64,000 nt of DNA from assembly GCA_965202585.1 (NCBI GenBank), contig OZ241826.1, positions 103,788,001 through 103,852,000 on the forward strand. The letters run 5' to 3'. Each line of letters begins with the position of its first letter. The stretch's first letter is position 1. This DNA is from Thalia democratica. Lineage: Eukaryota. The translations under genes were made by a program, and so were the position numbers. This document shows positions 23,052-32,000 of the stretch, in pieces. The notes below the pieces were generated by a model, which did no database searches, had not been told where the DNA came from, and saw only the letters and a list, made by a program, of their open reading frames with translations.

Positions 23052-26000
23052 ATGGCTTCTCCCATCACGAAACCCTGGCATGAATACACAGACGATGATG
23101 ATTTGCGTCCTTACCAAAATGAGGTTGCCGACGATCAAGCAGCTAGTTCTGTAGAAAGAAGTGCCAGTGGTGTGGCACACCAGCCTGTCGGTGTTGACGA
23201 CTGTGCTGGCCCTCAAGTTGATGCTCAGGCAAAAGCTCCACAGCCACCAAAAAGTGTGTGGAAAGTTATAAAGAAAACACCTGCTGTCGAAGCTAATGAG
23301 CAAGTTGAAGGTGGTGAAGATTCCCAGCAACAAGAACCTGATCAAGCTGATCAAGTTGACGGCAACTCTGCTGATGATGGAGACTGGAACTTAGTTATGA
23401 ATAATAAACATCAAAGAAAGAAGGAAAAGAATCCACCTAAGAACAACAAAAAGGAAAACCGTCGCCGCAGGATAAGAAATCCAAATGGTAATGGTTCTAA
23501 CCGTAATGGAGCCAACAGTAATGTTGCCAACGGTAGCCCCAAGAACCAAGGTGGTAAAACCAAGAACACAGGTGGTGGTAGTTCAAAAGACCAAGGTGCT
23601 TCCAATGTCGGAAAGAAAGAGGTGCAGGCAAGTGTTGAAGGTGAAGCAGCAGCTGAGGATATGAAACCGGTACCAGCTAGTCTACCTAAGACTAACCCTT
23701 GGGACATGAGTAGAATTGCACGTGCTCCACCATCTTCAGGTGCTGCTTCAACGAGCCGAGTTGTCGATGCTAGAAGTAACACTAACCAGAATGGACGCAG
23801 GCAGAGGAGAAGGAGGAGAAGGAACAACAAACACAAAAAGAAGGATGAAAACAAGGGTGATGAGAAGAAGGTGATTGTGGCAGAGGAGAAAGAAGTTGTC
23901 CAGAAGAAGTTTGTGGATGCTCCCCTACCAACAAAGAGCCCTTGGGCCAAACCTGCCGTACAAACAAGTGAGTTTAGACAATCTTTAAAATGTTTTTTTA
24001 TGAGTCAATTTTAAATAGTTTAGTAAAAATGTATCAATTTTTATATTTTTTTTAATTTACTTAGTTTTATTTTAATTTGTAGCTACTTCTTCTTCAGCCT
24101 CAATGCAACAATCTCCTTTAACATCAGCAAATGCAGGAAGTTTCAGGCCAACTCAAACCAGTTAGTTATAATTTCATATTTTTGGTTATTTATGATTGAT
24201 TAACAGTAGTTGTTTCAGTTTTTGGTAAGTTTTACTAGCATTTAAAAAAAATATTCCCATAAACTAATGTTGAAATGAAAGTATGATGTGACTCAAGCCA
24301 ATGTTTTTGATAAAAGAGTGGCAATCCTGACAAGCAGTCATTTTATTGGTTAATGTGATGTACATGTGTTTGCCGTAAATATGTTTTAATATTTCAAACT
24401 TTTTAGATGCTGCCGTCACCATTCAAACTAGTTCAAAAGATGCTGAACCCAATAAAGGGGTTAGTCATATTTATAAATATGTTTGATTTTAAAATGTAGG
24501 TTTCGATAAATAATTAAATAAAAAAATTTTTTTTAGTTTAAAAGAAATTTTATCTAACTAGTTTTTATAACTAATGAAAAAAAAATTATATACCTTTATT
24601 CATATTTTTCTATAATACAGTTTAAAACAAGTGTTTTACTAAATATGTTAGGTGGTCTCCTTTTTTTCATAGAACTACTTGCTAAATGTTTATTAGTATT
24701 TTAATATTGTTGTAAAAGTGACTTAATATTCAGTTTGAATTGTCTTCAAAATGTCTTTTTATACAATCACTTGAGTGCAAAATAATTTTTGAGACCTCAT
24801 AAAGTGTGACAAGCCTTTTTATTTCGTGGCTAGCTTCAAACTTTGAATTACCTCAAACAATGTGCAGGGGTTCCAAACAGTGGGTAGGAAGAAGAAAAAC
24901 AACAAGAGACCACCTGTTTCTTCAACAGCCAAAGTTGCAGCAAGGCCTGCCAGAAGAGAGGTGAGGAACCAGAAAGCAGCAGCAGTCACTTCAGCAAGAA
25001 GAGGTGGCTCAGGAGAGAAGGTGGCCAAAACTCAAGGAGGACGAGAACCAGCCCAAGGAGCAGGAAGCAGCACCGGGAAGCAGCAAAAAGCAGCAGCAAC
25101 AAAAGCAAGTGGAGCTCAGGGTTCAGCTTGGACAACAAAAGCAGCAACTCCAGTTGCATCAGCTACAAAGGTAGACATTTCATTTTTAAAAGTAGAATGT
25201 TTTACAAAACTTAGTATATTTAATTAAGTTTTGTTTTGATATCTATAAGGCTTGCTAAATTAATAAAAATTGTTATTAGAATTGCATTCCAGATTAATAC
25301 CTAATTTTAGTTGTCTTTGTGCTAATTGCAGTTGTAGTTGTAGTAAATAGCTATTTTACCAATAAACTATAATTAGTTGAATACCATTAGCTTGGATTAA
25401 AAAGTAGAACTGATTTAAAGTAAATTCTTTAATAAAATAAAAATTTATTGTACAACGTTTTGCTACAAGCGCATTTCAACTAGGCAAGAGTACTTAAAAT
25501 TTTTTATAACTAGCTTGTAGAATATTATTGTGCACAACATCTGTAGTTGTTTTAAACTAACTGTATTGTTGTAGGTAGCTGACAATTCCTCAACTTCAGC
25601 AGCTCCAACTTCACAAGAGGCTCAACCTAAGAAAGTTAGTATAAAGTTTATAAATAAGTGCTTATTTGCAATAAATTCAGAAAAAGTTTTTTACACTTGT
25701 TTTGTTTAGTGTTTTTAAGAGCTTTAAAATCTTAACAAATTTACAATTTATTTAGTTGGTTTTACATCATTTGTTAACAGCTTTTTGTTGAAATGTATTA
25801 ATGACAAACAAAAAGGCTTTGAATATTTGCAAAGACAAAGAATATCTAAAATTAAAGAAAATATACTGATATCTCAGGCTACTATAAAAAATGATTATAC
25901 AGTGTATACTTAAATTGAAAAGTGTTTGAGCTTTAAAATCAATTTCATGTTAGACTTTTAATTAATGCTTATTAAATGTGTTTATAAAATGATTAAAAGT

Positions 26001-29000
26001 ATTAATTTATTATATCAACTGAAAACTTCTTATTTACAGAAGTTCCAGAAGATGAAGTGCAATAAAAACAGAGAAGTCGTACCTGTTGGCAGCTCGGCAG
26101 GGTCAAGCTCTCAAGGAGTGAAGGAGACACAACAACAACAACAAGGAGCTGGGATCCAACAACAAGGAGCTGGAGTTAAACAACAAGGAGCTGGAGTTAA
26201 ACAACAAGGAGCTGGAGTTAAACAACAAGGAGCTGGAGTTAAACCACAAGGAGCTGGAGTTAAACAGCAAGGAGCTGGGATCCAACCACAAGGAGCTGGA
26301 GTTAAAAAACAAGGAGCTGGAGTTAAACAACAAGGAGCTGGAGTTAAAAAACAAGGAGCTGGAGTTAAACCTCAAGGAGCTGGAGTTAAACAACAAGGAG
26401 CTGGAGTTAAACAACAAGGAGCTGGAGTTAAACCACAAGGAGCTGGAGTTAAACAGCAAGGAGCTGGGATCCAACCACAAGGAGCTGGAGTTAAAAAACA
26501 AGGAGCTGGAGTTAAACAACAAGGAGCTGGAGTTGAACCACAAGGAGCTGGAGTTAAACAACAAGGAGCTGGAGTTAAACTACAAGGAGGTGCAGGCAGA
26601 CCAGCAACACAAGGCAATGTAGGGCGCACCAGAAAAGGTAATAGTAGCAGAAACTGTTTATTGTGAATAAACTTTCTTTCCCGCTTTGTTGTTTGCTTTT
26701 TTATGTAACATGAAGTACTTGTTTTAATCTAGTATTTCTTAGAATAAGAAGCATATATAAATATAGTTTTAACAGGCATGTTTGTTTGTCAAATCAGGTC
26801 ATAGAAAAAATGTTTTAATTTTGAAAGACCCCCATAAAAATAACTAATTTATTTTATTTTACTAGACTTATTAAGGAGATAATATAAGTAGACTATTTAT
26901 CCATGCTAAATAAAAGTGCATTTAATTAAAAAACTTCATTTGCAAGTTTAAGTAAAATTAAAGTTTAACTAAAATCACAGTTTCCCTTTTCATGACTAAT
27001 CAAACTGAAACTATTCTTTTTGCCAGACCTAAAATTTTAGCTATTATGTCCATAGACGTCCAGTATTTTAAAATAACTTTAGCTCCTATCCATTATCTCC
27101 GGCATGTATATACTTAAATTAATCATATTTTGTTTCATAGACAAAATGACCCTATTTAATCACCAGATTCTAGTGCAGGTTTTTCCAAAACTATATTTTG
27201 TTTCTAATCAACCCTCGGAAAAGTTCAAAAATCATTCGACCTTGTTTATTGGATATTTATCTTTTAAGCTTACTACCCATTTCACTTTCAAAGCCTTAAT
27301 GCGCTTAACAGCTCAAAACTGCCCACAAAGACGATATTTCCCTATTTGGGTTGCCAGTCTCTAGTGGCTAAGTCCATATTACATGTCAAACTAGGTACTG
27401 TCGTAAAGTTGCACACAACTGCTCACCCTATCAAAGCAGTCAACTAAAGCATATGCGGAAGTCCAGAGAAAATGTTCCTGAACTTTTGTATGCCGTAAGA
27501 CAAGCTCAAGCTTACATAAGGTCATGTCATACCAACTCGATCAGACCACAGGTTTCACGGTTGTGGCTGACTGATGAGTCCTAATAAGGACGAAACTGGT
27601 CTCAGTTTTCAGAAGGCTTGTGGTCCGACGATCGAGTTGGTGTGATCTAGTTTTATGTTAATATGAGCTTTTCTCATGGCATACGAAATTTCATAAACTT
27701 TTTTCTGAATTTTCGCCCATGTATTAGTTGGCTGCTTCTGATAAGTGAGCATGCAACTTTACTGGCATCTTAGTTTCATATTCCAAGTGACACAAGAACT
27801 TGGTTACCCAAGGTATAAAATATCGTCTTTGTAGGCAATCTTGTACAATTGAGCGCCTTAACTAGCAAGGCTTCAAAAAATAAATTGGTAGTAAGCTTTA
27901 GAAAGATGATTGTCTAATAAACTAGAAATATGTTTTTTGCACTTTTTCCAAGGGCTGATTATTAAAAAAAAAGTTTTGGGAAACCCTGTGCTAGAATCTA
28001 GTGACTTCAATGAGCAAAATAATATAATATAAAATACTGTACTTACATAAACCACCAAAAACCACGCCGAAGATTATGGGTATGGCAAAAAATATTTTTG
28101 AATATTGATCATTTATGGACATAATAAATTTACGTCCTGCACAATTTATGGTTTCAGTTTAACTAGTCATGGAAAAGTTGACTGATTTTAGTGAAACTTT
28201 AATCGTAATAATTTATATAAATTATGGATAAATGCATGTGTGCAACTTCACTAGGTACTTAAATTCATGAATCAAGTATACACAAGAACCAAAGTGTGAA
28301 ATATCCAAAGTGTGAAGTATCGTCTTTGTATCCTATTTAAAGCATGTACATTATGTGCACAGTTAACAAAAACTGAGTTGCACCGTCATAGAGTTCAGTT
28401 ATAATTGAAAAATGTTTAAAAAATTAAAACTAGTGATTTGTTTATTACCATTTAGACCATAATAAATTTTCTGCCTAAAAAACAAATCCATCTTTTGTTG
28501 TTTAAGGCAAAAAGTAAACGAAAATAAATAAAGAATATTTTGTATTTCTTTCAGCAGGGAGACAACAAACAAAAACAATTCTTCCAATTCAACCGCTCTC
28601 CTACATGGAAAGAAGAAGTGAGTCCGCTTGAACTTGCTTTTTGTAAACGATGTACAAGTTAACTGAAACACTTGACGATGTAAAATAAAACTTTTGTTCA
28701 GGATTGTTTTTAACTTGAACAGGAATGGAAAAGCAAAAGGAGCAAGGAGAAAGAAGTGCTCGCAACAACAATAACAACAGAGGGGCAAGAAACGGAAGAA
28801 ATGGAAACAGGAACATGAACAACAACAACAACAGGAGAGGAGGGGGGCGACATAGGCCACGTATGTTGTTCATGATTAATTAAACTTATAATTATTATAA
28901 AGTTATTATAAGTGGGTTTGACTTGAGTTTAGACTGCTTGTCAAACAAACCAAGAGAACTTATCAAGATGTTAGGCATTTAAAATAGGTTAAGTAACAAG

Positions 29001-32000
29001 TAAAAAATAATAGCGTTTTAGTTATTAAACCCAGTCTTTGAACAAATTCGAAAACTTATCAAATACTTGATATAACTTCCCTTACAGGAAACAACCAAGG
29101 CCGGCCTCGTAGAGAAAAAGGTTTTGGGGAGAGGCTGGTGTACCTCAGGGAGGACTTCTACAGAAAGCCCGAAATGGCTGGGTGTCGCAGAACGTGGATT
29201 AACAAAGATCACAACTTAGAGAATCAAAATTTCTTTTTGAGAGCGAGCATCAGCCCGTGCCCCAGCACGACCGAGGGTTCAGTTGCAAGCGAGGGTGAGT
29301 GGAGAGATTTGCAAAAATATAGCAGTTTAACAAGTCATGCAAAATTCTACAAGCAATTTAAAATTATGACTTAGTTTAATAAAATACCGGGAATCCTATA
29401 AATAATTTTGATTATTTTTATATCAAATACGAGTTGAAAACTTTTTTTTGGCATTTATCATTATCATAATTATATTCTCGCATTTATTATCTTACACATG
29501 TAATGTATCAGTCTGTAGCGTTGATGTGCTCTATAACAACTTTTAGCTGTCAAATCTTAGTTAACTCATTTTTGTTTGTTTTTGTATAATCATTTATTGT
29601 AACCCTGAAATAGGCTCTAACAACAGTGCAAATAACCCACCTTGTGATGATCCAAAATAGAATTACAACATTAAGCTTAAATTTTATTATAATAAACTTA
29701 TAGGCTCTCTTGATAACCCCTTTTTGGACAATCCACCTTACCCCATTGATAATCCCGAAGAGGTCGTCACCACAGGTCCGTTCGCCGGCTTCACCAGAAA
29801 GAAAATCTACCTTGCTAACAGATTGTTAGTTTAATTTTTGTTTACAAACCTTGGAAAAGCCATATGTAAAAAAGTTATCACATAGTTTATTCAAAGTTTT
29901 AAAGTTTCGTTTTTATTAGTTGCTTTGAACAAACGTGATTAGCGAGAACACATGACAAATAAAAATTCTAATTTAATTAAGTATATTTTTTTACAGCGGC
30001 TTCTGGTTTAGCCACAGAAATTTGGAAGTTTTAGACAATCGACACTTGAAAAGCTTGGTAAGTTTTCAAAACGTCAACACATTAATCATTTACTAAAAAA
30101 CTGTTTCAAGCTTTGGATAAAAAATTATGACAAATAAGTTACACAATTGTTTTTATTAAATTTGCATAAAAGGGTATCTAATTTTATTATCTATAAGGTA
30201 TAATAATTTTACTTAATAGTTTCTTATCTACATACCATACTAAAAAATAGTTTTGTATAAGTAAATCTGTTTTATTTATTTCGAAACTATAACCATTTTG
30301 AGTGTTACTTGTTAAATTTTTCAATAGTCGCTACTTCAAAATAAATTAAATAACTGTAACATTACTAAACACAACTATAACAAAACTAAATACAAATATA
30401 ACATATTAAATACAGCTATTACATCATTGACTACAACTATGACATAACTATTAACAACTGTTAAACCGCCAATTACCTCTATGACATAACTAAATACACT
30501 TTTTAATTAACCAAATACAACTACGACAAAACAAATACAGCTCTTACGTCACTAACTACAACTATGCATAAATAAAAGCAACTGTCAAATAACTAAATAC
30601 AACTGTTACGTCACAGATGGATCCTGAAGGGTACGTTCAATTGAGCGAAATGATGCACTTCCACACCTTCACAACTCACAACATAACCCGTCGCGAAGTT
30701 GTAGAGGTAGTTTGAAATAGTTTGTACCTGGTTTAAAAGCTAATGACAACCATAAACTTTATAAAAAGGAATAAAAATAACTATGATGCTATGTTTTTAG
30801 ATTTAGTTTTTAATATAATTTTTATAAAAAGCTGATTTTTTAAGCTACCTTTTAATATTATCGTTTTAATGTTTTGTGTTAAAAAATATAGAAAAGTTTA
30901 CGTAACTTTACTATGATACTTTGTATAACTCCGTTATCTTCTATCAGCTTAGTTTAGTACTAGTTTCTAACAACTAAACGAATGTAGTTATTGCAATCGC
31001 GACTGCTACGTAACCGTGTTGATTTTGATTCTGTCAACGAAAGAGTGAGATGCATCTACAGGAACGGCATTAATTTCACACTAAACAACCATCAGTTGGA
31101 AGTTATATATAGGAAAAACATCACCACTGGTGAACAACTCATCACAGAGCCAATTTACGGTTTGATAGGGAAATAGCTTACAATATATAGTATTTAAAAT
31201 GCACTCTAAAACTTTTTGTAATTAATGTAATACTTAAAATTCAATTTAAAACGTTCTCGATTGTTTGATAATGTTTAGAAGTCAGTTATCCTGGTTGCAA
31301 GTTTTTTCTTTCAGTGGTTGACAGTAGATTGTAGGTTTATTGAGTTCAAGAAAAAGTAAACTAGATGAAGGTTTTTATTTATATATTTACAGGGAAAATC
31401 CAACCGTTCGTCGAAGGAGTTCAAGTGTACTGGGACGCTTATTATTGGCGTGGCGCAGTTTACTACTTGTCGGCCCATTTTCCCAACAATGGAAGATTAA
31501 GCCAATATGATGTCAGTTGGCTGTACGACGACCTACAGGATGATGCTGTTGAACAAGACCAGTTGAATGAAGAAGTTCTCGTTCAACGTGATATGGTTCA
31601 ACCAGAACAGACTGCTGGTTCTGATCAAGGTTTACTTGCCAGTTATGAGATATTAAAAGTTTTAAACAACAAAATATTTCAAGATATAACGTTAATTTTT
31701 ATTAGTGTTTTTGAATTTTAAACTTAAGTTACAAAAGTACAATATAATAATAAAGAAGTATCATAAGTTAATACTTGTTAATTTATCAAAAAACTTATAC
31801 CAACACATCAAAACATACTAAATTTTCAGTAGGCAATCTTCAAGAAAGTGGTGCACAGTCTCAAGCAACCAGCCAGCAAGATAAGGATACCCAACAAGAC
31901 CATGAGACCAAAGCTATGCAGGAGGTAAACGAGGATGAAGCTGAAAAAGCTAACCATGGTAAGAATATGTCAAGTACATAAAAGTAATTCATACCAACAA

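Follow-up and report, generated by a model that had tools for sequence, protein, structure and literature searches.

A hammerhead ribozyme at the hinge of a 1.3-kb inverted repeat in Thalia democratica

The locus and its parts

The window analysed here (a stretch of 64,000 nucleotides from contig OZ241826.1 of Thalia democratica) contains an imperfect inverted repeat of about 1.3 kb with a single hammerhead ribozyme at its centre, located between two putative exons. The parts of the locus are:

26040-26638, plus strand: putative exon encoding (QQGAGVK)n, a 21-nt minisatellite, AG/GT-bounded (read from the sequence)
26895-27435, no strand assigned: left outer arm, single-copy by genome search and depth; inverted copy of 27736-28233
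27436-27550, minus strand: inverted 5'-truncated copy of the family 3' module (H ~73-185), from matches to family copies
27548-27735, plus strand: full 185-nt module H (long stem I, hammerhead core, 3' part and canonical 3' terminus), from genomic copies
27565-27607, plus strand: type I hammerhead ribozyme with minimal stem III (Rfam RF00163, full-length)
27736-28233, no strand assigned: right outer arm, single-copy; its sole matches in a genome search are itself and the left arm
28241-28330, plus strand: third partial direct copy of right-arm positions 27752-27833, just past the arm end (local alignment)
28552-28620, plus strand: putative next exon with acceptor ...tttcag and donor gtgagt (likewise read from the sequence)

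At a permissive setting, the Rfam model Hammerhead_1 (RF00163) matches 27565-27607 on the plus strand over model positions 1-45, with 24.1 bits and an E value of 0.0011. The score falls short of the gathering score of 34 bits, and a scan of the whole window at the gathering threshold gives zero matches, because stem III has only 2 bp and a 2-nt loop, like that of minimal PLE-type variants. The core bases CUGAUGA, GAAA and GUC are all present and follow the type I order, stem I being open. Stems I and II comprise 6 and 4 bp, respectively, and cleavage is predicted between 27601 and 27602. Many family-copy reads part from the window sequence exactly at 27601. An earlier note on this DNA had described a complete type I hammerhead in the loop of the foldback, of the minimal Penelope/retrozyme type with a vestigial stem III, and both the full-length alignment and the 2-bp stem bear this out. 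Lacking is any minus-strand hammerhead remnant in 27400-27750. The stem III sequence ACUGGU is near-palindromic (most family copies have the palindrome ACCGGU) and 6 bp are possible only as a dimer. We consider the core to be intact, but of a minimal, dimer-dependent type. In a 111-nt context, the catalytic fold is predicted at -43.2 kcal/mol vs -49.6 kcal/mol for the minimum free energy fold, and is thus 6.4 kcal/mol less stable than its competitor. Because the core stands alone and is out-competed by the alternative fold, the ribozyme probably cleaves little. Given the single cleavage site, neither excision of a unit nor formation of a circle is possible from this locus.

A repeat search of the window finds nested inverted blocks that converge on the hammerhead. 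BLAST of the sequence against its own reverse complement covers 26957-28203 (67.6% identity, E 2e-82), and a gapped alignment of the arms, extending to about 26895 and 28233, has 477 Watson-Crick pairs in 635 columns (75%); both agree with the nested blocks noted previously at ~26895-28233. The unpaired spacer between the arms is 68 nt long, with the single ribozyme core inside it. The arms are symmetrical about 27584.5, which agrees with the axis of stem I (27586), and stem I does continue into the long arms, as originally described. The predicted RNA fold has a free energy of -492.9 kcal/mol, vs -269.7±8.7 kcal/mol for 30 dinucleotide shuffles (z = -25.6), and 422 of its 486 pairs join the left arm to the right. 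The proposed single imperfect rod capped by the ribozyme is therefore what folding predicts. The inverted repeat is not an assembly artefact, because the arms differ by 25% and independent contigs of two organisms tile the whole stretch (the sequences aligned to the window for tiling and depth were contigs only).

Within the foldback, only 27436-27735 is repeat-family sequence. The plus-strand module is 79-86% identical to many genomic copies, and its homology ends where more than ten other copies also end (HBH ~507-513). The minus-strand copy is without the ribozyme core; its reverse complement matches family copies to their common end (78% identity to a 41-copy panel), and its leftward end is the canonical 3' terminus of the family. 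The inner arms, of ~115 nt each, are thereby recognisable as two inverted copies of one retroelement. The suggestion that two retroelement copies had been joined tail to tail holds for these inner ~115 nt, but the copies are joined 5' to 5', with their 3' ends outward. Both reach the canonical 3' terminus and, as in Penelope-style insertions, there is 5' truncation and an abutting inverted copy. No open reading frame for RT or GIY-YIG is present at the locus.

The outer arms, of ~500 nt each, match only each other in the 802-Mb genome and have single-copy depth. The left arm retrieves only itself and the right arm (69%, E 5e-30), with 74.7% identity over 494 aligned columns, and the right arm has no match among the fetched family loci. 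An origin of the outer arms from another repeat or the second hammerhead family was considered and rejected, there being no match in ~60 fetched loci or elsewhere in the window. The third, partial copy (28241-28330) aligns to the right arm with a local score of 39, vs 22.5±2.5 for 200 shuffles, and the repeat search of the window shows it as well. By direct reading, no convincing target-site duplication was found at 26880-26894/28234-28248 or at the element/flank boundaries, and clear junction microhomology was not recognisable.

Upstream, an open frame spans 25965-26666 and includes the tandem repeat at 26137-26589; in our reading, the frame continues open across the putative exon junction. 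The foldback thus probably lies within an intron of ~1.9 kb, in which the hammerhead would be in sense. We describe the host gene as putative only, since neither a La domain (Pfam, seven open pieces) nor an EYYFS-like motif was found in it.

The retrozyme family in the genome

The repeat family consists of a hammerhead retrozyme of 327/328 nt. Its core occurs in at least 2,342 copies (1,173 + 1,169), vs 0 for a reversed control. Direct pairs at 327-328 nt occur (nine among the first 100 matches), as do H-B-H arrays. Retrozymes characteristically consist of at least two tandem units of ~170-450 nt, with a type I hammerhead in each, and the family conforms to this; the locus has a single hammerhead, no tandem unit and no B module. 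Family copies have variable 5' ends and a constant 3' end, and their stem I is intrinsically ~23 bp long. All 14 inverted neighbour pairs are arranged minus-then-plus, with no case of the reverse order. Junctions with a single ribozyme as the hinge occur in 33 copies and include several distinct junction sequences, and we infer from this recurrence that the hairpin is a habitual fold-back point. The earlier note had looked to copies that keep both arms as the mark of a mobile unit. In its full 1.3 kb the foldback is single, but smaller foldbacks of the family (225-545 nt) are found repeatedly at unlinked loci and have arm-vs-arm differences in common.

Inspection of ~20 further hinge-type copies gave no case of an inverted repeat extending beyond the element. 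We rejected the idea that family insertions generally have inverted flanks, as the repeats lie within the element in ~45 loci. In an apparent exception (L060), the flanking repeat is a MITE with more than 1,000 copies. Another copy (L045) lies between 74% inverted flanks, and its flanking repeat is out of register. As the repeat leaves the element in no other copy inspected, the locus is a one-off and does not demonstrate a recurrent mechanism.

PLE insertions include an inverted 5'-truncated copy upstream and carry hammerheads in their pLTRs (Craig et al. 2021, PMC8557442). The family resembles them in its variable 5' truncation, constant 3' end, inverted copy abutting the 5' end, and minimal hammerhead with a palindromic stem III. 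Unlike anything described for PLE, the inverted repeat at this locus runs ~500 nt past the 3' ends into single-copy DNA. The family also shares with metazoan non-LTR retrozymes (Cervera & de la Peña 2020, PMC7229834; Li et al. 2026, preprint 10.64898/2026.07.22.740005) a type I hammerhead, an AT-rich non-coding unit of ~327 nt, tandem dimers or multimers, and thousands of copies. The locus differs from these in having one ribozyme and no tandem unit, so that no monomer or circle is possible, and in its long non-retrozyme arms.

Decay of the arms

Identity between the arms is 75.4% for the inner and 74.7% for the outer parts, with a K2P distance of 0.30 (the inner value is from n=114 columns, with an error of about ±8%). 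The best arm match (88%) is at 27400-27449, and there is no break or spacer across either element/flank boundary. The arms differ by 74 transitions, 84 transversions and 33 indel events, without codon periodicity, and their mismatches comprise 36 G:U vs 38 A:C, with no G:U excess on either strand. Because inner and outer divergence are equal, G:U is about equal to A:C, indels are many and codon periodicity is lacking, the arms appear to have decayed neutrally after a single copying event. The arms are 75% identical to each other and each is 75-78% identical to the family panel, the self-identity of which is 90.6%. They are closer than two independent family copies of that age, which points to one template and one event.

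Both arms are present in the sister organism (organism B), with 5.5-12% difference vs 4-5% in the flank. The duplication thus seems to predate the split of the two sister organisms. Of 39 listed between-organism differences, 35 fall at positions that still match the opposite arm in one species but no longer in the other. A joint in one organism B contig that skips 26935-27477 was disregarded, being supported by 24 letters. A selected rod would be marked by compensatory or G:U-biased changes and by excising ribozymes, which were not found here; the between-organism differences break pairs. The equality of G:U and A:C, the many indels and evolution at least as fast as that of the flanks also speak against the idea of a viroid-like rod unit put forward earlier.

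Origin of the foldback

The account that we favour, with about an even chance of being correct, is that the locus is a genomic scar, now inert, left by a fold-back duplication with the ribozyme hairpin as its hinge. The retrozyme would have inserted into the apparent intron as a short 3' copy (module H). At or soon after insertion, a DNA strand may have folded on the ribozyme's own stem I/stem II hairpin and been copied along itself, by fold-back priming or a replicative template switch. The resulting inverted duplication would have taken in the ~115-nt element tail and ~500 nt of adjoining single-copy DNA, leaving the single ribozyme core unpaired as the hinge, with the short templated extra copy at 28241-28330 marking one outer junction. 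Both arms would then have decayed neutrally to ~75% identity, from before the split of the sister organisms. Fold-back inversions arise by hairpin-primed repair or replicative template switching. Fold-back inversions and palindromes are reportedly seeded by short inverted repeats (work of Tanaka et al. in 2002 is said to bear on this). The locus is like such inversions in its short unique spacer (68 nt), its axis on a pre-existing hairpin and the extra templated piece at a junction. It is unlike them in being interstitial, ancient and fixed, with only 0.6 kb per arm, and its mechanism is a presumed one.

An origin at the level of retrotransposition is unlikely, though it accounts for much of the anatomy. 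Here, a read-through RNA of H plus ~500 nt of flank would have been inserted as one 1.34-kb unit by snap-back and 3' transduction, either as a full copy with an inverted 5'-truncated copy, Penelope-style, or as a hairpin cDNA that primed itself. In favour are the minus/plus inverted pairs in which the family routinely inserts, and its 33 single-ribozyme hinge copies; the two arms share a common outer end, as expected for two cDNAs of one RNA, and the equal inner and outer divergence fits. PLE machinery has been reported with inverted 5'-truncated copies and with retrotransposition of host sequence in trans (PMC8557442). However, a source of the outer arms is expected at ~70-75% identity, and the genome search yields only the two arms; no other inspected family copy holds sequence beyond the canonical 3' end in its repeat, no target-site duplication is visible, and the third partial copy at 28241-28330 is at odds with a partial-tandem layout. 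Improbable, in our view, is a pre-existing single-copy inverted repeat (e.g., the last survivor of an old foldback or MITE-like family) hit centrally by a head-to-head retrozyme insertion. The genome is rich in 70-75% inverted repeats, and retrozyme insertions inside them occur, in the middle of the MITE at L060 and between the inverted flanks at L045, but the outer arms are single-copy, unlike a MITE, and the unbroken arm alignment would demand a palindrome without a spacer and an insertion precisely at its axis. Equal divergence of inner and outer arms would then be a coincidence. Hardly credible at all is an origin of the two arms from a lost protein-coding gene, each being a diverged copy that reads toward the ribozyme. 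Short frames do face the centre (86 aa at 27104-27364, plus strand; 61 aa at 27873-28058, minus strand), but Pfam gives no significant match, and when the genome was searched in six frames with the 86-aa sequence, no paralogue turned up, the sole match being the other arm (36-38% identity, 4-5 stops). Mismatches within this frame have no codon periodicity (22/23/20; p = 0.9) and the arms contain 33 indel events. The Pfam, paralogue and periodicity results led us to reject the coding reading.

A functional or mobile RNA, whether a ribozyme-capped retrozyme or viroid-like rod or an intronic gene for a long hairpin RNA that yields small RNAs or undergoes editing, is very improbable. The rod is predicted to be very stable (z = -25.6) and the ribozyme core is intact, the locus is kept in the sister organism and probably transcribed in sense within an intron, and the 225-545-nt foldback variants of the family propagate as units. 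On the other hand, there is one copy in 802 Mb, with one cleavage site and no tandem or opposite-polarity ribozyme. The arms lack an excess of G:U over A:C, have 33 indels and are only 75% paired. A comparison of the organisms shows the locus diverging no more slowly than its flank, through changes that disrupt pairing, and the catalytic fold is 6.4 kcal/mol below the competing fold in stability. Uniqueness of the outer arms in 802 Mb similarly goes against the previous proposal that the 1.3-kb foldback is itself the mobile unit. Barely plausible is a retained intronic RNA structure, either as a ribozyme-gated hairpin feeding small-RNA production or A-to-I editing, or as a bridge between the ends of the ~1.9-kb intron; for a hairpin-RNA (endo-siRNA) source, the repeat is long, yet with only 75% pairing and 33 indels. 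The locus shares with viroids, viroid-like satellites and HDV-like circular RNAs a predicted quasi-rod with a hammerhead, and competition between the rod and the catalytic fold. Unlike them, the locus is chromosomal and single-copy, with one ribozyme of one polarity and no sign of selection on pairing. The amniote intronic hammerheads HH9 and HH10 are ultraconserved and have full stems. The probable sense-strand intron position is similar, but the ribozyme described here lies in a decaying transposon copy and has a sub-threshold Rfam score. We see no sign in the sequence of a present function of the locus, which is probably inactive.

The ribozyme is real but ordinary, and the foldback is not a new mobile or viroid-like RNA. 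The apparent viroid-like rod would be a head-to-head scar of the usual Penelope type, left by an abundant retrozyme and enlarged on one occasion by inverted duplication of the single-copy DNA beside it. For transposon biology, the implication is that the long stem I hairpin is a recurrent fold-back point, as the 33 hinge copies suggest, some of which propagate as 225-545-nt units. In one case, the fold-back would have taken along ~500 nt of non-element DNA, through hairpin-induced palindrome formation or PLE-type 3' transduction. If the latter were true, the locus would provide the first trace of a Penelope-mobilised retrozyme combining 3' transduction with snap-back.

The foldback and its central hammerhead

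The foldback, an imperfect inverted repeat, aligns with its own reverse complement over 26957-28203 (67.6% identity, E 2e-82), and a gapped alignment of its two halves, the arms, reaches ~26895/28233 with 477 Watson-Crick pairs in 635 columns. Repeat finding, self-alignment and gapped alignment thus bear out the nested inverted blocks that an earlier note had described around a hammerhead. The locus is tiled by independent contigs from two organisms and the arms differ at a quarter of bases, so the foldback is not an assembly artefact. As RNA, the 1,339-nt foldback is predicted to fold at -492.9 kcal/mol; 422 of its 486 base pairs link one arm to the other (dinucleotide shuffles, -269.7±8.7 kcal/mol), in agreement with the proposed single rod capped by the ribozyme. 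Its parts are given here relative to module H, the 185-nt part of a 327/328-nt hammerhead retrozyme unit.

Parts of the foldback
26895-27435 and 27736-28233, no strand assigned: outer arms, matching only themselves and each other in the genome search
27436-27550, minus strand: left inner arm, reverse complement of module H positions ~73-185
27548-27735, plus strand: plus copy, full module H by homology to the family
27565-27607, plus strand: Hammerhead_1 (RF00163), full model aligned in a permissive Rfam scan, 24.1 bits, E 0.0011

The full-model match confirms the complete type I hammerhead that had been claimed for the loop. The Rfam scan of the whole window at the gathering score gave no match because this hammerhead, at 24.1 bits, falls below the RF00163 gathering score of 34. 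It comprises CUGAUGA, a 4-bp stem II, GAAA and a stem III of 2 bp closed by a 2-nt loop, followed by the cleavage triplet GUC, with the scissile bond predicted 3' of 27601, and a 6-bp stem I. No trace of a second hammerhead was found on the minus strand at the locus in the permissive scan. Stem III reads ACUGGU in this copy versus the palindrome ACCGGU in the family, and by its stem III the ribozyme is predicted to be of the minimal, dimer-dependent type. The core is intact, but there is no partner copy in cis for a stem III of this type, and in folds of the 111-nt context an alternative (-49.6 kcal/mol) wins over the catalytic structure (-43.2 kcal/mol). The locus has a single cleavage site and so cannot give rise to a free monomer or circle.

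The retrozyme family and its small foldbacks

The genome comprises 802 Mb (117 Mb in the contig holding the window), with 1,173 forward and 1,169 reverse occurrences of the hammerhead core pattern (reversed control, 0). In the list of the first 100 places, nine pairs of direct neighbours are spaced by 327-328 nt, and all 14 inverted neighbour pairs are minus-then-plus, none plus-then-minus. The unit anatomy was drawn from dissection of ~60 fetched loci.

Modules of the unit (~60 loci)
Module H, 185 nt: ~23-bp stem I, core, 3' part and a 3' terminus that is fixed
Module B, 143 nt: alternating with H modules, for example in H-B-H arrays

Across these loci the 5' start varies and the 3' end position is constant, and the 5' end is very often adjoined by an inverted, 5'-truncated copy. 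In kind, the unit fits the metazoan non-LTR retrozymes, tandem repeats of ~300 nt that bear type I hammerheads (PMC7229834), for which derivation from the pseudo-LTRs of Penelope-like elements has been argued (preprint 10.64898/2026.07.22.740005). A second repeat family (L035, L040, L041, L044, L045, L046 and L047, G000:C1) has only the ~35-nt hammerhead core in common with the H-B family; it too shows 327-nt direct spacing, with head-to-head palindromes of 350-900 nt.

A junction-specific pattern search identified 33 single-hammerhead hinge copies with several distinct junction sequences. In the ~20 hinge-type copies examined the inverted repeat is confined to module H; at locus L060 the flanks are inverted too, but as part of a MITE with >1,000 copies. 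Some small foldbacks are found again at unlinked loci, where the flanks differ and the arm-versus-arm differences are shared.

Recurring small foldbacks
L059:1890-2433 and L062:1815-2358: 544 nt, 99.3% between loci, 90% arm to arm
L055:1973-2202 and L060:1964-2185: 230 nt, 93% between loci, 83-85% arm to arm

Likeness between loci exceeds that between arms, so these 225-545-nt variants were copied as units, and they appear to have been retrotransposed as such. The idea that the foldback is itself a mobile unit therefore holds for the family's small foldbacks and fails for the 1.3-kb structure, whose outer arms are unique.

The MITE-like repeat at L060:2178-2420 (G000:C7:30731077-30731319) has >1,000 first-look candidates at 80-88% identity, each accompanied, at ~100-200 nt, by an inverted partner; in L060 a hinge-type retrozyme copy lies at the centre. 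A composite 350-552-nt repeat (L003:1478-2028, L005, L007, L010, L016, L030; 98-99% identity across unlinked loci on contigs C14, C6, C7 and C199) begins as a single-hammerhead foldback and runs on into non-family sequence. Its ribozyme is mutated in stem II and GAAA (...AAAGACTAAAC), and its amplification looks recent, with some copies within ~3-kb segmental repeats. Nine hinge-type junctions, all on the minus strand, lie over 1.8 Mb at G000:C5:77244177-79072079 at 60-540-kb intervals; the >2 kb common to L058 and L065 (91-93% identity) suggests a large repeat, dispersed or segmental, that bears the foldback.

Decay of the arms and genomic setting

Arm-to-arm identity is 75.4% in the inner, element-derived part and 74.7% in the outer, single-copy part (K2P 0.30). 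Identity of each inner arm to a 41-copy panel (self-identity 90.6%) is 75-78%, and that of one inner arm to the other is 75%; insertions made independently and as old as this would be less alike, and thus the inner arms derive from one template. The changes between arms comprise 74 transitions, 84 transversions and 33 indel events, and mismatches capable of G:U pairing number 36 on the plus strand versus 38 on the minus strand; from these comparisons the arms appear to be under no selection on pairing. Contigs of the sister organism (B) span both arms with 5.5-12% differences, versus 4-5% in the right flank. Thus, the foldback is older than the split and conserved no better than its surroundings. 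In 35 of 39 listed differences from the source organism (A) in aligned columns (a partial list, the partner base being assumed unchanged), one organism kept the arm match and the other lost it (23 and 12), a pattern that would be one of continuing decay.

A protein-coding origin of the arms was rejected: arm mismatches lack codon periodicity, no Pfam match was obtained for the arm open frames, and the sequences opposite them in the other arm share 36-38% identity and are interrupted by 4-5 stops. In the left arm, 26944-26983 holds 2.4 copies of a 17-nt unit that is single in the right arm (28183-28203), a small tandem duplication younger than arm formation. Depth at 27934-28001 in the right arm is raised ~7-fold in both organisms (511 and 901 versus ~70-180 in the adjoining arm), an indication of a short stretch there that is repeated or of low complexity (an A-run plus GTTTTGGGAAACCC).

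Putative exons around the foldback
AG at 26039 to GT at 26639, plus strand: putative exon with a (QQGAGVK)n open frame, inferred
28552-28620, plus strand: putative next exon with good acceptor and donor; further exon-like pieces follow

From these signals, the foldback would be intronic, in an intron of ~1.9 kb, and the hammerhead would be sense-oriented. A 21-nt minisatellite (26137-26589; 21.6 copies, 89% matches) lies inside the (QQGAGVK)n frame, which is likely to be an exon of low complexity. At 30352-30608 there are local direct repeats (68-76%, ~125-nt offset), with a 21-nt period at 30352-30450, and open pieces of that region yielded no La match in Pfam.

Origin of the foldback

Similarity to other genomic copies is confined to 27440-27730 (79-86%), and family homology ends at the canonical 3' terminus on both sides; thus, two copies are joined 5'-to-5' with tails outward. 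The suggestion of two retroelement copies joined tail to tail was right as to inverted family copies, which form the inner arms, but not as to their orientation. The copies fuse without a seam inside the ribozyme's own stem I, and the axis of arm symmetry (27584.5) is that of stem I (27586). The outer arms match each other in the genome search (69%, E 5e-30), match neither the ~60 family loci retrieved nor any other part of the window, and are single-copy by read depth (foldback centre, ~490,000 summed depth). A third, direct copy of 27752-27833, 90 nt long, follows at 28241-28330, immediately beyond the right arm (alignment score 39 versus 22.5±2.5 for shuffles).

One event would be required, in which the element tail and ~500 nt of adjoining DNA were copied inverted around the ribozyme hairpin. 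We prefer, with about even confidence, in-situ fold-back priming or template switching at that hairpin at the DNA level, which would need no lost source locus; the 90-nt templated piece at the outer junction would be typical of replicative switching. The main rival, 3' transduction by Penelope-style or self-primed cDNA from a read-through transcript, is in keeping with the family's habits, but the source copy it predicts is absent from the genome search, and we consider it unlikely. Insertion precisely on the axis of a single-copy palindrome already present needs a coincidence in position and also in age, and is quite improbable. Still more doubtful, to the point of being very improbable, is a functional or mobile rod, against which the evolutionary tests point.

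The earlier note thus stands as an observation, and only in part as an interpretation. The element is a retrozyme with Penelope-style insertion, and the running on of the inverted repeat at this locus into single-copy DNA is unusual and probably a one-off.
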